A DNA stretch of 63,908 nt, counting the filler, from Pelomyxa schiedti (Eukaryota > Protista > Evosea): NCBI GenBank assembly GCA_020536535.1. It is 10 parts of 10 records of this genome, joined end to end, with 100 filler letters (N's around TTAATTAATTAA, not from the genome) between each part and the next. Parts side by side here need not be neighbours in the genome. Positions count along the whole stretch, not along the records: positions 18,170 to 30,217 come from JAHLWZ010001223.1; 9 more parts are not named here. One strand, 5' to 3'. Under the pieces are notes generated by a model that saw only the letters and a list, made by a program, of their open reading frames with translations, was not told where the DNA came from and made no database searches. Within the stretch, counting starts at the first letter, position 1; each line of letters starts with the position of its first letter. This document shows, piece by piece, positions 18,170 through 30,217 of the stretch. Position numbers and translations under genes: made by a program.

Positions 18170-18601
18170 TAATGAAAAAGGCACTGGCTGTACCACACAA
18201 CCAACAAGCAAGCCAATTGAGTCCAAACAACGAAAACACACACACAGCCACTGTGCCCCCATAAGTAAAGTAAAGTAAATTGCTTCACCTCGCGAAGGAA
18301 TTTCCCTTTCCTGCTCCAGAGAATCGGCCTCGGCGCTGGCCTTGGCGTCGCGACCAGCCCCCGCGCCCCCGCCGCCGCCGGTCTTGGTTGCCACCGCGTC
18401 GGCGTTGGGACCGTTGTCGCCGCCACCGGCTTGAGCGGTCGTGTCGCCACGATCATGGGCTGGTGGTGAGGGTGGTGGTTGCGGTTGCTCGGCACCAACA
18501 ACACGCGGGCGCTTGGGCTCTGGCTCTGAGGGAACTACTACTGACTGATCGTCGGCATCACCGTGGCTCGCGTGAGGAGTGGCACTCCCTGCTGATTGCA
18601 T
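18170..18601 (-). CDS. Hypothetical protein, first exon(s), truncated by contig end
   Basis: MQSAGSATPHASHGDADDQ...EPEPKRPR (NLS-like)...EIPSR, then GTGAAG donor near 18288. Confidence 0.45.
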
Positions 18602-19550
18602 CCGTGTGACTTTTAAAAAAAAAAAAATTTGACGCATCGAGTGCAATGCCCATGGCGGTTGTCTCACGTGTTGAGTACTCACCCAATAATGATGATCAGT
18701 GGTTCTGTGAAGTCCGAGGAAACGAACGTTTTCCGCATCCAAGACGTAGTGGGTGTGACATCGGTGTCAGGCACGAACAACAGTTGCAATCAATGCTATG
18801 CTCCTGTGCTCCTTTGACAATTGTTTGTACTGCTGATTTTACTATGCCTGCTTCCATCCCTTGGGCAAAGTGTTTGTGGTGACTCAGCAGTGTGTTGCCT
18901 GCTGGTGTAGCGCTTGTCTCAGGGGGCCTTTGGTGTTTGGCAGGCCTTATAATCCACCATGGAGGTGGCGGTGAACTTGTTATTGAAACAGGTTCTGAAG
19001 CAAGTGGGTGTTATTCCAGGAGCGTACACAACTGCAGACACTTCAAGCCAGTGGTGTTTGGAGCCACTGATGTACAGAGGTCATGGGCAATGCACAGTGC
19101 ATTGATCTGTTTGAGAAGGTCCGCTGCGGGATTGAAAGAAGATTGGTCCAGCTTGAGGCCAGTTCACTTCAAAATGCAACCTGTCCCTCTTCTTTTGGGG
19201 AGTGGGTGGTGTTTGTTCTGACAGTGCATTTGCATCGTCTACACTGACTCAGGTTCATTAAACTGACTGTCGGGGCCAGCCGGCAACGATAACGACAGCG
19301 CCGGTAGCACAATCGACAACCACAGTCGTCGTAGTCGCTTGGGCAGAGCCGTAACAGTGGCGCCCAGGTAGTCTGGGTCCCAGACAATCGGCACCACCAT
19401 TACTGCTGACAAGTCGTCGAAGATTTCCGAGCGAAAAGGCACTTTGGCACCCGTTCAGACTACTTCCCTGCCTCTTACCTTCTCTTTCTGAATCGCTATG
19501 GCGTTTCACTCTGGAGCAGCTTCGTTCCCGAAAAACATTTTATCACTTTC

Positions 19551-21023
19551 ATGATCGCCAACCATCGCCAACCGCAGTCGAGAGAGCATGTTGGAAGGGC
19601 GATGAGTGTGGCACCCAGGTTCCGCCCCTCCTACTCATCGTCGTCCTCGCAGTCAACAATCGCGGAGCCCGGCACTACCACCACGCCCAAGGAGACGGCC
19701 AGGGACCAATTCCGCGCCATGGCGGCGGGCGCGCACCCGCGGTGCGGCGCGCGGTGCCCACTGTGGCTCATGGTAGCCAGATACAACAACAGCTCAAGCA
19801 CGATTATGGGTGGTGGAGGGGGAGGGGGCCGCCCAGGTGAGGATGGGACTCTGGCACTGAGGCTGGTGTGGGCGTGGATCGTGGAAACCTCGAGGTTCTA
19901 CTGCTTGAGGCTCTGGGGCGAAACAGGCACGGGCTACGGCTTCGTGGTGGCGCTTCGCGTGTCGCCACTGCTGCTCGCACTCACACACAAGATGTGGTGG
20001 TGGGCGGGACTGAGCGGCCCACGCGAGATTGTGGGGGCCAACCAGGACTACCTCGTCGTCGCGAGGGTGGCGACGGAGAGGCGCGCAAGGGAAATCTATC
20101 TGCAGGACAGGGCCACTGGCGAGAGGGTGAAAATGCTGCCGTCTTTTGGCGGTGACTACAGTCGGCGTCCAAAGTGCCTAGATGCTACCAATGGGAAATG
20201 GTTTGTGGTGTGTGATTCAGGTCGAGGGGAGATGACTGTTGTCGAGGTTCCAAGGAAGGGTTGTTCAGCAACAGGTGAAAGAGCATCTGAACCCACAAGA
20301 ATCAGAAAGCCCACTGTAGTTTCACTCAGGGCAAGGTGGAAAAAAGGCAGGCCTGAGTTTGTGTGTGGCCACGAAGATCAGGTGGTCCTTCACTGTTGTG
20401 ACTTGCAACGGCCAGCCCGTTTTTTTGAGCTTGTTCTTGTGGATGTTGCACGGACCTGTTCATCAAACAAACTTGTGGTGTTGAGTGCAACTGTTCCCAG
20501 ATTGATTGATCTGCCTCCAGACATTCGCAGATATGATCGATACGATCTCTTTATAGGAAGACGTTGCTTTGCATTTCTCAAAGAGAATGGTTGCCGCTGC
20601 TTCGTCATGTTGGAATCCCAGGTCTTGCGAGGCATCCTTCCCTTTGTCATCATGGACGAAGGAACAGGGAAGCTGCAACCAATGTCTCCTGGGCCAAAAC
20701 CAGACAGTTGGGGTGGCGATTGGTGTGTGTCATGGTTGAACAACTCACAGTTCTGCGTTTTCAAAGGCAGTAAAGGCCACTATGAGGTGTGGGGTGTGAA
20801 TGACTCGACCAAACCGGTGAGGACACAACGGTGCCTCTGTTGTTGGGCTGCCACCAGTGCGTTTGTTGAGGGTGGCCTGCTTTTCCAAATGAGTGAAGGA
20901 GAGAAAGAGATGCACGTGACTGAGGAGTCCACTGGTTCTCATGTCGTCACATTCCAGTCATTCAGAAAACTGAGACCAGACCTACTTGAAACCCATCACT
21001 CCTTTCCTCTAAGCTGCCCCTGA
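19551..21023 (+). CDS. Expanded 'QF-x-AL...HPRCG' family protein
   Basis: 490-aa intronless ORF: ARDQFRAMAAGAHPRCG, LVWAW, N-x-KW, LVDVA, YEVW, EGGLLF, VTEESTG, shared with paralogs in this window. Confidence 0.8.
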   Translation: MIANHRQPQSREHVGRAMSVAPRFRPSYSSSSSQSTIAEPGTTTTPKETARDQFRAMAAGAHPRCGARCPLWLMVARYNNSSSTIMGGGGGGGRPGEDGTLALRLVWAWIVETSRFYCLRLWGETGTGYGFVVALRVSPLLLALTHKMWWWAGLSGPREIVGANQDYLVVARVATERRAREIYLQDRATGERVKMLPSFGGDYSRRPKCLDATNGKWFVVCDSGRGEMTVVEVPRKGCSATGERASEPTRIRKPTVVSLRARWKKGRPEFVCGHEDQVVLHCCDLQRPARFFELVLVDVARTCSSNKLVVLSATVPRLIDLPPDIRRYDRYDLFIGRRCFAFLKENGCRCFVMLESQVLRGILPFVIMDEGTGKLQPMSPGPKPDSWGGDWCVSWLNNSQFCVFKGSKGHYEVWGVNDSTKPVRTQRCLCCWAATSAFVEGGLLFQMSEGEKEMHVTEESTGSHVVTFQSFRKLRPDLLETHHSFPLSCP

Positions 21024-21436
21024 CAGACCTTGTCCCAAGAGACTCTTTTCTCTCTGGTGTGAATAGACGAGACAGAACACGATCTGTTCAGAAAGACTTT
21101 TTTTTTTCCTCTCTTTCCGTACGAACGCCAACCTTGCATTGGACTGGACGCCTTACGTATCTGGTAGTTCTCCACGGTACACAACACCCTGTGCCAACCA
21201 AAAACCAAGTTGCCGTATTAGTGTCACAATGACCCACAAAGAAAGGAAAAAATGGCTGGGGCTTAATGGAATGATCACAAAGCTGCCACGATCCCGAGAA
21301 GTTTCTCAAGAAAGCAAAGGTGCACCATGTGTGAGTGGCCTGCCGTCAACCAACTAGAGAGTGAAGTCGGCGCGAACATCAGCGACCCAAGAGAAAAGCA
21401 CCGTCAGACTGGGGGCAAAAAACCGATTTTTTTGCG

Positions 21437-23327
21437 ATGGCCGATGGGGCGGCCGGGTTGGTGGTAACCACAATTGCGGGAGTAAGATCGTCTAACTGCC
21501 GCGTGTTTGAGTTTGGTGCCGAGTCACTGAAGCCGAGAGGAATTAACCTCATTGCTGCCATGTCAAGAGTTTGCAGGGCAAGTGTTCTAAATATAAATAA
21601 GAATATCTCTACTGTAACAACCACTATGCATATCCGTATTATTTATTATCTATAAAAAATGTATTTATTCGAAGTTACGAAGTTCTTGTATTTCTTTTGA
21701 TGACCTATAGTATGTTATGCTTTTGTTTTATACTTTATTGTTGTTTTTAATTACCCCTGTTACAGTCGTGGAATGCTGCATGTAACGCAAGTCGTGTGTG
21801 GGAGACACTGTATCGCATTGACTTCGGGCACTTTCCCTTGCAGACTGTTGATACATCTGGCGGGGCTACAAACTGGAAAGACCGCTACAAAACCAGATTC
21901 CTTCAGACTATTGTCATTCACCTCACAACTAAAATCCCACAGGACTCTCCCACGTAAGGATCTTTTCATACCACCATTCATTCTGATCACATTGTTTTCT
22001 TCGGTTTTTTACAGATTGTCCCCTGACTTTTTCAAATGTTGGATGTATTCATTCAATAAGTGCCCTCTGCATCTGGAAGTGTTCTGTGGGCTCCCTCCCC
22101 ACTTGGATATGAGACCGCCAGCTTTGGTGTCCATTCCCAGCAGAAAAGGGCCAGTTGGATGCATATCATTTATCTCGCAGTTCCTCCTCATTTCTGGGTG
22201 TCCGTATACCGAGGAAGACTTCACTCAGGTCAAGCGCCTTGTAATAATCTATCCACTAACTATCTTCAGATGGGAAGAGCACTTGCAGATCAAATTTTCG
22301 ACGAGGACACAGACGACAGAGATGTAAAATCTGTGCAAAATGTGATTGCCCACATATCCGGCAACACTTTGTTAACCCTGAACGTCGTGGTATGGAAGAT
22401 ATTATTGAAAGGAACCTAAATTCTTACAGGTTCTTGCAAAAGATCCTATTTTGGCTCTAATGAGTCATAAAAGGCGAAAGTTTGACCAGTTCCTTGATTA
22501 TGCACTTTTTGAAAGTCACGGTGTCTTACTTCACCCCATGTTTAAGTTTGTCTGTACTTCAAGCACCGAATTGCTCCTAATTCACTTCACTTCCAGGAGC
22601 TTGCGGAAATTCAACAGGCATCTGAGGAAAACTATTTCCGGCAAAGGGAAACCAGAAGCCGTCGTGTGGAACGGCGTCATTAGTCAAAGGAGTCTCCTGA
22701 ACCAAATGAAATGCTCGCAGCTTCAGTATTTTGGATGTCATTCCGACTGGTTGTTGTCCCCCACTGGCATTGAGAGCGTGATTAACAAAAAAAAAATATA
22801 AAGGGGAGGAGAAAGCATCCTTGAATGCCCAGAGGCATCAAGGTTGGCAAAATGTACAAGAGGGCTCGTGCGGTGGATGTTGCTAACATCAACCGGCTCC
22901 TCCATCAACTGGGTGTTTGATCCCCCTCATCATGTTCTGAACATGGCAATGTAGTACACTCATCCTTTTTTTTCCCTGAGCACCAGTTTTAAAATTCCAA
23001 AGATGGCACAATCAAGAAGATGAGGAAGAGGACAGTCTGAGTTCCAAGTATGGTCTAACTGAGGATGTAATGAACCGAATTGAGGAAGATTTCCGCAGGT
23101 TTTCTGATACACAAATACTCAAAACCAAACTTACCAGCTCTTCAGGGCTCAAGAGGAAAGAGGTCACTCTGATGAGGATTATGATAGCTCTGTATGTCTT
23201 TCTTCTTCCGCGCGGCCGTTCTCAAAAATATTCCCAGGTGGAACCCTTCAAACAGAGTCTGGAACAAGACATCGTTAAGCACAGTGATACTGGTCTCACC
23301 ACAGTCACTGATGGAACTGATTCCTAA
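21437..23327 (+). CDS. F-box-like protein, multi-exon
   Basis: RVFEF...IAAMSRVCR|SWNAACNASRVWETLYRIDFG...NWKDRYKTR is a typical F-box C-half plus following helix. In-frame join uses a GCAAGT donor (~21578) and TTACAG acceptor (21765). 3' exon structure uncertain. Confidence 0.6.
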
Positions 23328-23647
23328 CAAGCAAAAAAACACTGAATAGGAAAAACAAAAAAACAAAAAAACTTACGGCGTGAGTACAAGAGCCAATACA
23401 CCCACTCACCCACCTCGTAACCCTTCTAACTTTGTGAATTAAAGCCAAAAATAGATCATCTTTCGGTTTCAGCTAACGCAACTTTTTTGGTTTTTCATTG
23501 AACTCCGCTGGCGTGGGAATTGTGTGGGTCCTAGGCTTTGGATTGGCCGATGTGTACTTAGTGCCTAACTTGTCCTTCGGAATTTTCACTCAGTAAATAG
23601 CAGACATGCACAAATGGACACTCTACCTGCCTAAAAATTGTTGAAGA

Positions 23648-24640
23648 CTATGAATCTATGACAGTGTGGTAATCCATGAAAGCCAGCAGGAGATCGGTCT
23701 CAACATGAGTGATTGCATACCTGACCACTACTGTGCTGGTTGGCTCTGTTCCATCGGACTGGCATTGTGGTGCCGAACACTCCCACACAAAAACGCCACG
23801 GTTCCGCTGCATTGCAAGGGTCATTATGACCAGCAATGGTGCCAGATTACAATCCATGGGCTGCAGCACCCCTTCGATGGAGCACGTTTCGTTGGTGACG
23901 GTGTTGTGGATGTTTTGAACCAGTGAGGTGGAGCCCTGTGAAACCACGCAGATTGGATCCCCACCAAACACGATCATGTTGGTGGCAAAGGGAGGGCTCG
24001 GTCTTGTGAACAACGGCACTCTTGTGGAAGCTCCGCGTCGAGTCAATGTGGTGGAGTCTCAGGACGCCACCTGATCCGGGAACAGCGATGAGCAGAACAT
24101 CGGGGTCAGACTCGCAGAGTGCCGCGTCAGGAATGGGGGCCAGATGCAGGTTTAAAGTCACCCGGCACTCCTCTGTGAACAGCTTGCAGTGCCCGCTGTC
24201 TCCATCTGGATCGGCGTCGTCGCAGAGCCTCCACAGTATCATCTCTGTCAAATCCCTTGTCGAATTCAACAGCACGATCCAGCGGCTGTTGCAATACACA
24301 CTCGGTGCGTGAAATCGCGGATTCCTAGTGCCATCGCCCGGGAACAAGTTCCTCACCATGAAACCTTCCATCCACAATGTCAACCACCACACCTAACCCC
24401 AGCTTCTTCGTCACCAGCAGCCTGTCCTCACCAGTTGGCAAGTTTCTGAGAGTTGCCACTTGGTCTGGCTGTATCCTCCTTGCGATGTCCGGGGGGGGAG
24501 CCGATGGACCCAACCACCATCGACGAATCCGAGAAGCCTCCAAACGTCTCAAACATCACAGACCTCACAACGCCCACAGTCGGCGACAAGCAGAGCCACA
24601 AGTGCACCTCGTGCTCCAAATCTTTTGTAGTGCCATCTGA
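23648..24640 (-). pseudogene. Frameshifted, 5'-truncated member of the HPRCG-type family
   Basis: LWLCLSPTVGVV, YCNSRWIV and HIDSTRSF blocks spread over different frames. Confidence 0.55.
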
Positions 24641-24649
24641 CACAAGATT

Positions 24650-25145
24650 TCTGGGAAAGATAGCAGGCCTCAGTTTGTGTGTGGCAATGAAGACCAATTA
24701 TTCCTTCACTGCTGTGATTCTGGCAGCAGACCCGCATCATTTTTTGAGCTTGTTCTCGTGGATGTTGCACAGACATTCTCATCAAAGAGACTGGCAGTGT
24801 TGAGTTCAACTGTTCCAAGATTGGATGACATGCCGCCACACCTTCGCGGATATGAGTTCTTTTTTGGCAACAGCTCCTGTTTTGCATTCCTCAAACAGAA
24901 TAAGAGTGGCGAATTCCGCTGTTTTGTCATGAAAAGGAGTCCACACTCCATTTTCTCTTTTCCCTCTCCCTTTGTGGACTTCATCAGAATGGATGAGGGA
25001 ACAGGAAAACTGCAACCAATGTTTCAGGCCCCTGCAGCAACCAATCATTATCCTCTGTCACAGTTGAACCAATCACAGTTCTGTGCTTGTTTTTGGTCCC
25101 AAACAAGATGCCTATGAAGTGTGGGATGTGAATGAAACAAACAAC
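24650..25145 (+). pseudogene. Internal fragment paralogous to the 19551-21023 gene
   Basis: FVCGNEDQLFLHCCD...FFELVLVDVAQTFSSKRLAVLSSTVPRL...MDEGTGKLQPM...YEVWDVN closely matches 20350-20810. No 5' half; frameshift near 25110. Confidence 0.8.
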
Positions 25146-25384
25146 CCGGCTGCTGGTGTGGATGATGTTGATGCTTCCGTCGCACTGTTTGCTTTGTGGG
25201 CCGACGCTGGTAACATGTGACGGCGTTCTGGGAGCTAGATACCACAGAAAGGACTCTGACCCGGTCAGAGTGACCAGCCCACATAATAGACGAGACACAG
25301 AACACGACAACTGGTCGGGGTTTCTCTTGGATCTGTTAAGAGGAACTCCCTTCATTTCTCCGAATCAACAACTTCTTGAAAACC

Positions 25385-28300
25385 ATGATGACAACGACTT
25401 TGTCAAAGTCACGCGTGGGATCCAGGGAGTGGTTCATAGCCGCACATAGGGGCGACAGTGACGCACTGCGGCGTCTGCTGGCCGGCGACCGCGACCTGCT
25501 AAACTCTATAGACAACGGACGACAACGAGTGGTGTGAATTGCGTAGCAACTCTTTTTTTTTTCACACGATAATAATTCCTTTGGGCACACACAGACAGCG
25601 TTGCATACAGCCACGTGGGCAGGGAATCAGCGGTGCGTTGAGTTCCTATTGTCAATGAATGTCGATGTCAATTCTCAGGTAAGGGCCCTTATTTTGAGGT
25701 ACTCACTGACTCACCCACAAACTTGTATCTCTCACTTCACAGATTGTGTGTAATACTATCCTGATTATGTTTTCAATCCCTCTCCTCTAAAAACGTAAAT
25801 TCAGGGGCCGGCTGTACGTACTGTCATAACTTTTCAATCCTTTTATTGCGTTTATTCACTTGCTTCAATTTCTCTCTCTTTGCTTTGCTCTGTGGCATGT
25901 TCAGGGAGTGTGTTACTGCTCCCAACCCTTTTTATCACGTTTATTCATCAATTTTCTGACTTGCTTCAATTTCTCTCTCTTCACTTTGCTCTGTGGCATG
26001 TTCAGCTTGTGTGTAACTGCACCCAACCCTTTTTATCACGTTTATTCATCAGTTTTCTGACTTGCTTCAATTTCTCTCTCTTCACTTTGCTCTGTGGCAT
26101 GTTCAGTTTGTGTGTAACTTCTCCCAACCCTTTTTATCACGTTTATTCATCAATTTTCTGACTTGCTTCAATTTCTCTCTCTTTGCTTTGCTCTGTGGCA
26201 TGCTCAGGATGTGTGTAACTGCTCCCAACCCTTTTTATCACGTTTATTCATCAGTTTTCTGACTTGCTTCAATTTCTCTCTCTTTGCTTCTCTCTGTGAT
26301 AAACTCAGGGAGTGTGTAACTGCTCCCAACCCTTATTATCGCGTTTATTCATCAATTTTCTGACTTGCTTCAATTTCTCTCTCTTCACTTTGCTCTGTGG
26401 CATATTCAGCTTGTGTGTAACTGCTCCCAACCCTTTTTATCGCGTTTATTCATCAGTTTTCTGACTTGCTTCAATTTCTCTCTCTCTTTGCTTTGCTCTG
26501 TGGCATGTTCAGCTTGTGTGTAACTGCTCCCAACCCTTTTTATCATCAATTTTCTGACTTGCTTCAATTTCTCTCTCTTCGTTTTGCTCTGATGTTCAGT
26601 TTGTGTGTAACTGCTCCCAACCCTTTGTATCACGTTTATTCATCAATTTTCTGACTTGCTTCAATTTCTCTCTCTTTGCTTTGCTCTGTGGCATATTCAG
26701 AATGTGTGCAATTGCTCCCAACCCTTTTTACCACGTTTATTCATCAGTTTTCTGACTTGCTTCAATTTCTCTCTCTTCACTTTGCTCTGATGTTCAGCTT
26801 GTGTGTAACTGCTCCCAACCCTTTTTATCACGTTTATTCATCAGTTTTCTGACTTGCTTCAATTTCTCTCTCTTTTCTTTGCTCTGTGGCATGTTCAGTA
26901 TGTGTGTAACTGCTCCCAACCCTTTTTATCGCGTTTATTCATCAGTTTTCTGACTTGCTTCAATTTCTCTCTCTTTCTCTTCACTTTGCTCTGTGGCATG
27001 TTCAGCTTGTGTGTAACTGCTCCCAACCCTTTTTATCACGTTTATTCACCAGTTTTCTGACTTGCTTCAATTTCTCTCTCTTCACTTTGCTCTGTGGCAT
27101 GTTCAGGATGTGTGTAACTGCTCCCAACCCTTTTTATCGCGTTTATTCATCAGTTTTCTGACTTGCTTCAATTTCTCTCTGCAACACTTTATATCATTTT
27201 TCTTACTGTTTGATGGACACTTTTATCCTATTGCCACAAGGGAGTAAGTATACACTCCTTGGCAGCTTTTGTTCTAACTTTCCGCGATTTTTATGATAAT
27301 TTGCACTGCTGCAGATTGTATGAACTCCACTCTTTGAATATTGCCTGTGCTCACCTTCTTATTTTTCAGGAAGTACTACTTTTTTTCTTATTCTTGCTGT
27401 GTTACTCATATATTTTGGGGGTCTCCCTTTCAAATTGAAAGGGTGATGTACGTGGCCACCCCCCAATATCCTTTGTTTCCTTTACTTTATTTGATGCCTG
27501 ACCCAAAACTTAATTTTCGTGTCCCTCTCTCTCAGACGGCACTTCATCTTGCCTGCAGACAAGGAAACGTTAGAATTGTGGAACAACTTCTGTCTTGTGT
27601 GGGTATTGGCAGTCATATCAAGGTTGGTTTCCCCCTTTTTGATTGACATGTGTTGTAATTCCTGCTGGCACAGAACAAGAAGGGAAAAACAGCACTTGAG
27701 AGCTCAGAAAATGATAAAGTGCGTCAAGTATTCCAAGCTGTGTGTCCAGCCACAACATCATCAACAACGCAGGCAGTCACCTCTCCCAAAACAGCCCAAC
27801 AACAACAGCAATCACATCCGAGCCCACCCTCTGCTCCAAATAAGACATCACTGTCGTCACCCACCCCACCAAAACCACATCCACAACCAGCAACTGCAAG
27901 ACGTACCACAACAATGGGGACCAGGAAAGTGCTACCCAGAGCTCTTGATGAAGGTGGTGACACCATCAACAACATCAGGAAACAAGAGAGAGACTGCTGG
28001 GAATTCAAGGCAAGGCCGATGAAGAGTTTAGTGAAAAACCCCTTCCCCTCAAATGAAAATGCAAACGCACTTTGTGTTCAAAAGATGAGATCACGGAACT
28101 GAAGGCAAGAATCACACAATTGGAGGAAGAAAACACAAAGAACCTGAATCTTCTCCATGAAGAAACCAAACAACATGCGACTGCTCAACAAAGAATTAAA
28201 GAAATGAAACGAATCTATGAAGAAAGAGAAACAGACAACCAACAAAGATTTCATGAGCTTCAACAACAATGTTTGTCCTTTCAGATCTTCTTTTTTTGCA

Positions 28301-30217
28301 TTTCTCATTCTCGTTCATATGCACATCATCAAGGGAAAAATAATTCAGAGGTGTGTCTGTGTATATGTGTGTGTTTTGTTGTTTGCCTTGACGTTGACAA
28401 TAACAATAATAATCTCTTAACAACATGCATATACATACAGATGGAGCTCCAAAGGTTGCAAGAAAAAACCGTGTCCGACATGTCTGCAAAGAACAAGGGT
28501 GTGAACACACCCTCCTCCAGTTGAACTCATCATTGGCTCCCTCATCACTGGGGGGTTTTTTTTTCCCTTTTTTCCAAAAGCAGAACTCAAGGAACTGGAG
28601 GCACACATAACAACATTGGAGGAAGAAAGTGTGAAGAACCTTAAAAGGTTTTGTGACGAGAGAGCATCTGACCAACAAAGATTTCGTGATCTCCAATGCT
28701 GTTTGTGCTCTCTGCCCGCTCACGCACACTCCATCCCCTCCTTTTTTTTCTCAACCCTAACCCACCCTACACAACATACATGCAGCACAATAACGACGCC
28801 ACACCAACAATTCTAATTCTGTCAATATAGACATAAATCATGTGATATCACATATTGAACAAGGAGAAGGCACGTGGCGCAACATTCTCCTCCCTGAAAA
28901 CAATAAGACCAATGACTGCAAGCAATTGCAACTCAGGATCACGTTTGAGGATCTTCCCTCTTTTGATGAAATTGTGTGTGGATCCTGTCCCCTTCAAATG
29001 GTGCCTTCCTCTCTTGTGAAGCTCCCCCCTTTCTTCTTTTCTTTTCTTTTTGAAGCTTCCCCACCTCCCTTTTTTTTTTCGTTCTTTGCGATGTTTCTAA
29101 CTAACTGGTTGTTTGTCACAAAAGATGGTGCAGCTTATCGTTTCAAGGAAGTTTGGAGTTGAACCAACACAAGTGATTTTCACTGTCGGTTCAGAAAACA
29201 ACAACTCTGAGGATCTGCTGCCGACCGATTCATCCATTGCCTTGGGTGACATTCAACGACGACTACAACACAGCGGCAGCTGCAGAAACAGAGTTGTTGT
29301 TCAAATCAAGGTTCGAATCAAATCAACAATGTCAATCCAAGAGAAAGACCTGAAACTTGTTTCCCCACTTGGAGTCGGATCGTATGGAACTGTTTTCAAG
29401 TGCACTTTCCATGATGATCACAACGCAATGACCACTTCCTCCTCATCATCCTCATCGGAAAGAACAGCAACGTTTGTGGCAATTAAAGCACTTCACGAAG
29501 CCATCAAGTCTGAGTTCAACATCACCAAGTTTCAGCAGGAAGCTTTGGTGAGTGAGACGGAGTTTTGTCTCTGATAATCTTGCGTTCTAAAATTCACGAT
29601 CCATCCACTCACCAGGTTTCGTCAAGCTTGAGGCATCCAAACATTGTGAGATGCCTTGGAACTTGCGTCACTAGCACAGGGTCACTCTGGATCGTGTCCG
29701 AACTTATGGAAATGAGTCTCAGGCAGCTCCTTCAACATGTTTGTTTTTTGCACGCTCTTCCTCCCACTCGTTTTTGGTTGAACTCACTCAGTTTGTAAAT
29801 ATGAATCTATATGTACATACATACACCAACACAATTATTAGAAAGATTTGACATTCATGGAAGTTGTGGCAGTTTCTTCCGGAATTGCCAAAGGAATGAC
29901 TGCACTTCACAGGTTTCATTCAATTTCAGTTCTTCTTGCCACTCTTTTTAAAAATAATATCATTTACGTTGATCTGCCTAAAAACACAGGAGGAACTACA
30001 TGCACCGGGACCTGAGCAGCAACAATGTTCTCCTCGATTCTTGTGGAACTCCAAAAATAACTGACTTTGGTACTTTCTGCAATTGACACAGACACAGACA
30101 CAGACACAGACACAGACACAGACACAGACACAGACAACACACAGACACACATACACACACCTCAACACACTCAACTCAACCAACTGAAAATGAAGGAGTA
30201 TCAAGAGCCCTCCAGCA
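25385..30217 (+). CDS. Ankyrin-repeat / coiled-coil / tyrosine-kinase-like protein kinase (3' end truncated)
   Basis: ANK exons WFIAAHRGD, TALHTATWAGNQRCVEFLLSMNVDVNSQ, TALHLACRQGNVRIVEQLL, NKKGKTAL; Pro/Gln linker; coiled-coil exons; kinase motifs LGVGSYGTV, VAIKAL, LRHPNIV, HRDLSSNNVLL, KITDFG. Confidence 0.92.
25743..27447 (+). other. Array of 19 candidate in-frame micro-exons
   Basis: AG|x|GT at 25743 ATT, 25805 GGGCCGGCT, 25905 GGA, 26006 CTT, 26107 TTT, 26208 GAT, 26309 GGA, 26410 CTT, 26513 CTT, 26600 TTT, 26701 AAT, 26798 CTT, 26899 TAT, 27006 CTT, 27107 GAT, 27241 GGA, 27315 ATT, 27370 GAA, 27442 GGTGAT. Confidence 0.8.
25840..27180 (+). repeat. ~101-bp tandem repeat, 13 full units, each an intron plus 3-nt micro-exon
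   Basis: Unit: GTGTGTAACTGCTCCCAACCC...TTTTCTGAC (branch-like)...pyrimidine tract...TTCAG-NNN. Confidence 0.95.
30085..30150 (+). repeat. (GACACA)n intronic microsatellite
   Basis: About 8 perfect hexamers after the DFG exon donor. Confidence 0.9.

Follow-up and report, generated by a model that had tools for sequence, protein, structure and literature searches.

A tandem array of putative one-codon exons in an ankyrin-repeat kinase gene family of Pelomyxa schiedti

Introduction

In the ROCO genes of the brown algae Ectocarpus and Saccharina, which are proposed immune receptors, tandem intron plus exon modules of a repeat-protein signalling gene are reshuffled, with diversifying selection on the binding face (PMC11378527). 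Each ROCO exon is 72 nt long, in phase 2, and codes for a whole LRR, so that it is the number of repeats that changes (PMC11378527); the effector is ROC-COR. Schistosoma MEGs contain runs of symmetrical micro-exons allowing in-frame variation; they encode small secreted proteins, micro-exons make up as much as 75% of their coding sequence, and their variation comes from skipping (PMC4015677). Arthropod Dscam also diversifies a recognition protein with tandem exon duplicates (PMC4015677); its exons are long and are chosen in a mutually exclusive way. Annotation misses the conserved 1-15-nt micro-exons of plants and animals, and those of plants have flanking introns that are spliced late; tags spanning 3 to 5 exons have been reported, not stacks of 10-30 hypervariable ones (PMC8831610). 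Such micro-exons usually occur alone or in pairs, and their sequence is conserved. In DARPins, the concave face of an ankyrin scaffold carries a variable site made up of the beta-turn and the first helix (PMC10484509). Both DARPins and LoopDARPins are laboratory libraries. In the latter, attributed to Schilling (2014), the central turn is reportedly swapped for a long CDR-H3-like loop.

The genome of Pelomyxa schiedti, obtained from amplified single cells, has 7.43 introns per gene, 98.4% of them GT-AG (PMC8887013). In the ankyrin-repeat kinase family of this species described here, reshuffling of tandem exon modules between and within genes was found together with diversifying selection. Unlike in ROCO genes, the Pelomyxa exon is 3 nt long, in phase 0, and encodes one residue; a single loop in a fixed ankyrin scaffold changes, and the effector is a TKL kinase. 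No ROC-COR domain was found in the annotated protein P0019, which matches only kinase families. Unlike MEGs, the gene has about 22 micro-exon codons within a large multidomain kinase, and its micro-exons, almost all of 3 nt, form a recombining tandem repeat. The stack works like ROCO exon shuffling and has symmetrical micro-exons in common with MEGs, but it departs from both in defining features: exon size and phase, effector domain and coding share. It would also differ from the exclusive choice of Dscam, since in RNA of one paralog (L011) consecutive micro-exons are included together for six residues or more. The gene family would be a natural, genetically encoded equivalent of the DARPin and LoopDARPin libraries. 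No report of one-codon exon arrays or of Pelomyxa micro-exons was found in the literature searched, most subscription journals being outside its scope.

Results and Discussion

Structure of the array

The window is the whole stretch of DNA analysed, 63,908 nucleotides long with filler, and all coordinates count along it; positions 18170-30217 correspond to P. schiedti JAHLWZ010001223.1 (GCA_020536535.1). TRF identified a tandem array with a period of 101 and 13.2 copies (Table 1). A preliminary description had presented its unit as an intron plus a codon, with an invariant CAG acceptor and GTGTG donor, a branch-like CTGAC motif, indels only in the intron part and a triplet in six states, never a stop. 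Alignment of the units agrees with each of these statements: the motif CAG-nnn-GTGTG is present in 13 of 13 units, CTGAC lies 46-56 nt upstream of the acceptor in 12 of them, indels are confined to the intron part, and the 13 triplets show six states and no stop. The proposed concentration of change on the triplet was checked by per-column entropy, which averages 1.17 bits at the triplet versus 0.12 in the 98 other columns. Variability within the triplet falls on positions 1 and 2 (1.83 and 1.28 bits), position 3 being much lower (0.41 bits). The triplet state counts give a binomial p=1.5e-4, calculated on units that are not independent, and the array alignment has a further variable spot (1.33 bits) within the intron, some 25 nt ahead of the acceptor.

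All units of this gene have a CAG acceptor; in the paralogs, most units other than the Gly type have TAG. The Gly unit at 26285-26311 has its own acceptor-side sequence, with a CAG acceptor, common to paralogs, and in L011 this unit type has turned to Arg (AGA) three times over. Open reading frames through the array on either strand were rejected as by-products of the repeat, since the period of 101 shifts the frame and indels break them.

The array lies within an ankyrin-repeat kinase gene

The array sits in an ankyrin/coiled-coil/kinase gene, at the beta-turn that separates ankyrin repeat 2 from ankyrin repeat 3. Exon 2 aligns to DARPin residues 106-133 and the next DARPin repeat starts at 139; the canonical gap is thus five residues, and a D-x-x-G-x beta-turn is missing between exons 2 and 3. 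The 1857 nt that separate these exons are fully tiled by 20 introns (52-131 nt) and 19 micro-exons, in the order ATT, 9-nt exon, 13 array codons, GGA, ATT, GAA and GGTGAT. The six flanking candidates (3, 9, 3, 3, 3 and 6 nt), which the preliminary description did not include, have unique introns. Outside the array AG-nnn-GT occurs four times in 534 nt, against 0.21 expected (0/5000 simulations). All 19 micro-exons are symmetrical (3, 6 or 9 nt, phase 0), and they total 66 nt, in a gene that exceeds 600 codons and encodes a kinase domain.

Table 1. Coordinates of exons, micro-exons and array triplets in the window
Feature	Position	Strand	Basis
Exon 1: start codon and first ankyrin-like repeat, 48 codons, phase 0	25385..25528	+	Translation; predicted junction
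Exon 2: ankyrin repeat 2, ends DVNSQ, phase 0	25595..25678	+	Pfam Ank E=3e-6
Micro-exon ATT (Ile), 3 nt, first loop residue	25743..25745	+	Predicted; slot I/M/L in all expanded paralogs
Micro-exon G-P-A, 9 nt	25805..25813	+	Predicted; slot occupied by a 9-nt exon in every expanded paralog
Array: 13 units, each an 84-104-nt intron and a 3-nt phase-0 exon	25858..27180	+	TRF, unit alignment; array-type triplet of paralog L011 seen spliced, the 13 triplets of this copy predicted exons
Array triplets, first seven (G L F D G L L)	25905, 26006, 26107, 26208, 26309, 26410, 26513	+	
Array triplets, last six (F N L Y L D)	26600, 26701, 26798, 26899, 27006, 27107	+	
Micro-exon GGA (Gly), 3 nt, GTAAGT donor	27241..27243	+	Kept in 9 loci including this gene
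Micro-exon ATT (Ile), 3 nt	27315..27317	+	Joined to next micro-exon in paralog RNA contig
Micro-exon GAA (Glu), 3 nt	27370..27372	+	Spliced in this gene (X1 record 4, 0 mismatches)
Micro-exon GGTGAT (Gly-Asp), 6 nt, before TALH motif	27442..27447	+	Spliced in this gene and paralog
Exon 3: ankyrin repeat 3, starts TALHL, phase 0	27536..27622	+	Pfam Ank E=5e-6; RNA contig
Exon 4: last ankyrin turn and cap, then Pro/Thr/Gln-rich linker	27674..28025	+	RNA joints, translation
Downstream exons: coiled coil, family-specific middle domain, TKL-type kinase	28085..30086	+	P0019

Exon 1, for which an alternative donor lies 3 nt further on, is kept in 7 paralogous genes and gave no match when searched alone against Pfam. 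The annotated protein P0019 is 100% identical to the kinase-side exon and matches Pfam PK_Tyr_Ser-Thr (E=1.6e-28). Its model is cut short near the contig end, where a (GACACA)n microsatellite (30085-30160) lies in an intron. The gene is split at the array by the NCBI annotation into an ankyrin fragment and a kinase. Exons 3, 4 and 5 are joined in RNA, with ankyrin repeats N-terminal to the kinase as in ankyrin-repeat TKL kinases, and the gene models of paralogs connect exon 3 to the kinase; exons 2 and 3 would likewise belong to one gene.

Two members of a large Pelomyxa-only family without Pfam match are located upstream, at 19551-21023 and 24677-25117. The family search gave 17 homologs, all from P. 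schiedti; the second member looks fragmentary, and this region is fused by the NCBI model to ankyrin exons 1-2.

Micro-exons are spliced in RNA

Reads from four runs of one study were compared with positions 27080-28460, which include one unit and the downstream flank. Two runs (X1 and X2) are single-cell RNA libraries; the other two (X3 and X4) behave as DNA, with unspliced contigs of up to 100 kb. The RNA results come from two contigs of depth 3-4, and contigs drop rare variants.

The first contig (X1 record 4) derives from this gene, in which the RNA joints are 27622>27674 and 28025>28085; the GT-AG joint of exons 3 and 4 is matched without mismatch. Its loose 5' end consists of a Nextera adapter followed by GAAGGTGAT, that is, the exon at 27370 joined to the exon at 27442, giving GAA|GGTGAT|exon 3 with 0 mismatches, unlike the unspliced genome, which has AAG before GGTGAT. 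The second contig (X1 record 3) comes from the paralog L011 and reads ATG|GGA, a retained intron, then ATT|GAG|GGTGAT|exon 3, with 60 of the 60 displayed loose letters matching. The ATG is the last unit of the 24-unit array of L011, and the 5' side of the GGA micro-exon is spliced in this contig. The ATG|GGA junction depends on one base (ATG versus the unspliced AAG) and is strong but single evidence. Spliced exons of at most 15 nt were thus recovered from both genes: GAA and GGTGAT in this one, and GGA, ATT, GAG, GGTGAT and, on one base, ATG in L011. The claim that the unit is an intron plus a codon is supported by the splicing of flanking micro-exons in this gene and of the last array-type triplet in L011. 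The one intron retained in the L011 contig fits stepwise removal of introns and recalls the late splicing of introns around plant micro-exons (PMC8831610).

Recursive splicing with zero-length exons was rejected, as 3 nt part AG from GT, the triplets are present in RNA and GT-starting triplets are absent.

Exon inclusion can also be pictured as variable, combinatorial skipping being the main source of diversity: donors and acceptors would pair across units and give many loop lengths per gene, a somatic, MEG-like diversification on top of DNA reshuffling. The splice sites are near-identical from unit to unit, any subset of symmetrical phase-0 exons remains in frame without creating new codons, and 4384 distinct ordered subsequences are possible from the 13-codon array. 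There are precedents in the skipping of symmetrical micro-exons by Schistosoma MEGs (PMC4015677) and in the LRR exons of brown-algal ROCO genes, which are shuffled and alternatively spliced (PMC11378527). However, in the two low-depth contigs all of the micro-exon junctions observed (6/6) join nearest neighbours, that between the last array unit and GGA included, and variation in unit number and order at the DNA level already accounts for exon symmetry, which makes skipping as the main source possible but doubtful. A CDR3-like generator, in which one-codon germline arrays would be both recombined and combinatorially spliced into thousands of ankyrin loops per cell, to recognise microbes or to manage endosymbionts, seems rather unlikely.

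Paralogous arrays differ in unit number and order

Searches with kinase-side exons and proteins identified paralogs whose models begin at exon 3 or later. Their DNA contains nine more complete exon 2-exon 3 intervals and a partial one. Eight of the paralogous intervals have the layout I/M/L, 9-nt exon, array, G-I-E/A-GD, and the flanks I/9-nt and G-I-E-GD are conserved as a block across the expanded paralogs. One of the eight, L009 at 1011, has no GTAAGT-type Gly exon and was excluded from pooled counts. Seven delimited paralog arrays have 4-24 units in differing order, encoding for example YMIW, HLYLLGF, TYRCYRRGHY and NDYYGYGFGIQHRLYG; the stack of L011 is predicted to be up to 29 micro-exons deep. 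The closest copy, L005, is 91% identical over 1.4 kb and may be a paralog or a diverged allele; its array ends with L-G-L-F, versus L-Y-L-D in this gene. One array position (L008:9273-9278) is occupied by a 6-nt exon (Leu-Asp) that keeps the frame.

At the other extreme, L007 (3819-4178) has only GAT, CAT, TTC and GGCGAT, that is, the canonical five residues D-H-F-G-D. This four-micro-exon turn is probably the ancestral state, as far as an unrooted comparison can suggest. A second short D-H-F stack in the same locus (L007:7513-7845), 71% identical, has lost the AG acceptor of its middle exon and is either a decayed duplicate or a shorter-turn variant.

The canonical gap and its exact realisation in this paralog would suit a mutually exclusive, Dscam-like choice of just enough micro-exons for a D-x-x-G-x turn, which can be built from subsets such as D-I-E-G-D. 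Against such a choice, six residues (M, G, I, E, G, D) are already fixed in the L011 RNA contig before exon 2 is reached, many arrays end without D or N, and the I/9-nt and G-I-E-GD flanks are kept as a block; we consider it very improbable.

The array unit is abundant in the DNA libraries, with a summed depth of 26-29 thousand in X3 and 9-10 thousand in X4, against about 60 and 17-34, respectively, on the contigs of this gene itself. This excess suggests hundreds of units genome-wide, although depth in amplified DNA is no copy number. Amplification from single cells (PMC8887013) and the frequency of mis-assembly in tandem arrays raise the matter of an artefact, and unit order in the assembly may be imperfect. 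Independent contigs nevertheless carry distinct arrays with locus-specific introns, and in both DNA runs the unit is present with a very high summed depth, along with the unique flanks of this gene at 0-1 mismatches. An artefact could alter the count or order of units, not create the architecture, and as an explanation it is extremely improbable.

Two identical unit-like sequences in L002 (416-510 and 637-731), 72-78% identical to an array unit and reading TAG-GAT-GT, lie on the two sides of a scaffold gap, which is directly upstream of a close kinase paralog; a collapsed array or a mis-join is the probable cause. Micro-exons are absent from the intronless ankyrin-kinase subfamily (P0021, P0024), so that the stack is restricted to a single ankyrin type. 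No other carrier was found when metagenomes were scanned with the unit pattern, and a protein scan returned only generic ankyrin genes of 38-59% identity. Among the latter matches is a contig labelled as a human-gut metagenome assembly (L020).

Selection on the codon and recombination between units

The 97 pooled array codons comprise 19 codons and 16 amino acids, the commonest residues being Y (16), L (15), D (12), I (11), G (10) and R (7), and include no stop, the absence of stops alone being a weak test (p about 0.05 on the first 57 codons) that is not relied on by itself. None of the 97 starts with GT, against 8.2 expected from position frequencies; this absence would be expected if AG|GT erased the exon. 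In five young arrays the per-site difference is 0.06-0.10 in introns, 0.53-0.79 at codon positions 1-2 and 0.13-0.37 at position 3. Minimum spanning trees of the distinct codons, built per array, contain 34 single-base steps, of which none is synonymous (19% expected, p=8e-4), in support of the diversifying selection proposed earlier. Decay of splice dinucleotides in paralogs, looked for as evidence to the contrary, was not seen: AG-nnn-GT is kept in 38 of 38 branch-motif-anchored intervals, and even where the introns of an array have diverged by 31-42%, these dinucleotides and the 3-nt spacing are still in place.

A tree of 83 unit introns, rough in its supports and based on few columns, clusters by locus with 12 label changes versus 51.9 after shuffling, which indicates that introns are homogenised within genes; the older Gly/Arg unit type is separate. 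This clustering, with the differing unit number and order of close paralogs, supports the suggestion of recent amplification by unequal crossover. The same codons recur across different locus clades, through either recurrent mutation or short conversion, to judge from the tree. In exons 2 and 3 the variable residues are concentrated immediately after the TALH helix. The variable positions of DARPins lie there too, in the part of the concave face, turn and helix, that DARPin libraries vary (PMC10484509).

A neutral intronic minisatellite would arise if a micro-exon unit had been duplicated and were mostly skipped, the flanking micro-exons being real and the triplet variation the product of a mutation or conversion hotspot. 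The RNA libraries do include contigs with the unit, and the single array-type junction belongs to a paralog and turns on one base. That base, however, matches the predicted neighbour exon of L011 itself. Moreover, the variation is uneven, AG, GT and the 3-nt spacing have outlasted the divergence of the introns, and stops, GT-starts and synonymous steps are all absent, constraints on splice sites and codons that a neutral repeat should not display. We regard this explanation as improbable; the triplets are very probably real one-codon exons under diversifying selection.

Proposed function of the stack

We lean towards full inclusion of the stack, the one-codon exons lengthening and diversifying a beta-turn of an ankyrin-kinase sensor. 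Each intron of 45-160 nt would be recognised and removed singly and in succession, as seen for flanking exons and one array-type exon, so that the 3-nt exons are kept; short introns would be taken out one by one by intron definition. Most mature mRNAs would then retain the whole stack and encode an insert of 22 residues instead of the usual 5, made of a conserved stem, I-G-P-A ... G-I-E-G-D, around a variable tip of 13 residues. The very hydrophobic nature of this tip might disfavour full inclusion.

At the DNA level, unequal crossover and conversion would add, delete and reorder single residues without frameshift, as comparison of the paralogs suggests, because each unit is a long, near-identical intron with one codon; the same processes would homogenise the introns within each gene. 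The statistics given above indicate selection that favours amino-acid change at the codon and purges stops and GT-starting triplets. A family of 10 or more genes would in this manner display differing, antibody-like loops rich in Tyr/Leu/Asp/Ile/Gly, coupled to a kinase, on the ankyrin binding face. Location, composition and selection point to the loop as a putative ligand-binding surface of the kinase sensor, and recognition of non-self or microbes would be its likeliest role.

The architecture appears to stand at the lower limit of exon-based diversification, each amino acid having an exon to itself. As every codon comes with about 100 nt of homologous intron, insertion, deletion or exchange of a single residue would become a matter of ordinary recombination, and loop length could vary in ways beyond the reach of point mutation. 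Long runs of 3-nt exons also offer a direct test of the spliceosome, namely whether intron definition keeps or skips them. The amoeba is host to three prokaryotic endosymbionts (PMC10579272), and the genes are candidates for a diversified family of receptors in it. At the stack, the NCBI models of expanded members are interrupted or cut short, which renders such systems invisible in protein databases.

The coiled-coil, middle-domain and kinase module is fused to many other N-termini in P. schiedti proteins (P0018-P0056), among them intronless ankyrins, ubiquitin, MORN repeats and LRRs, and in one of these proteins the module precedes a caspase-like domain instead of the kinase. These fusions suggest domain shuffling in a putative sensor-kinase family.
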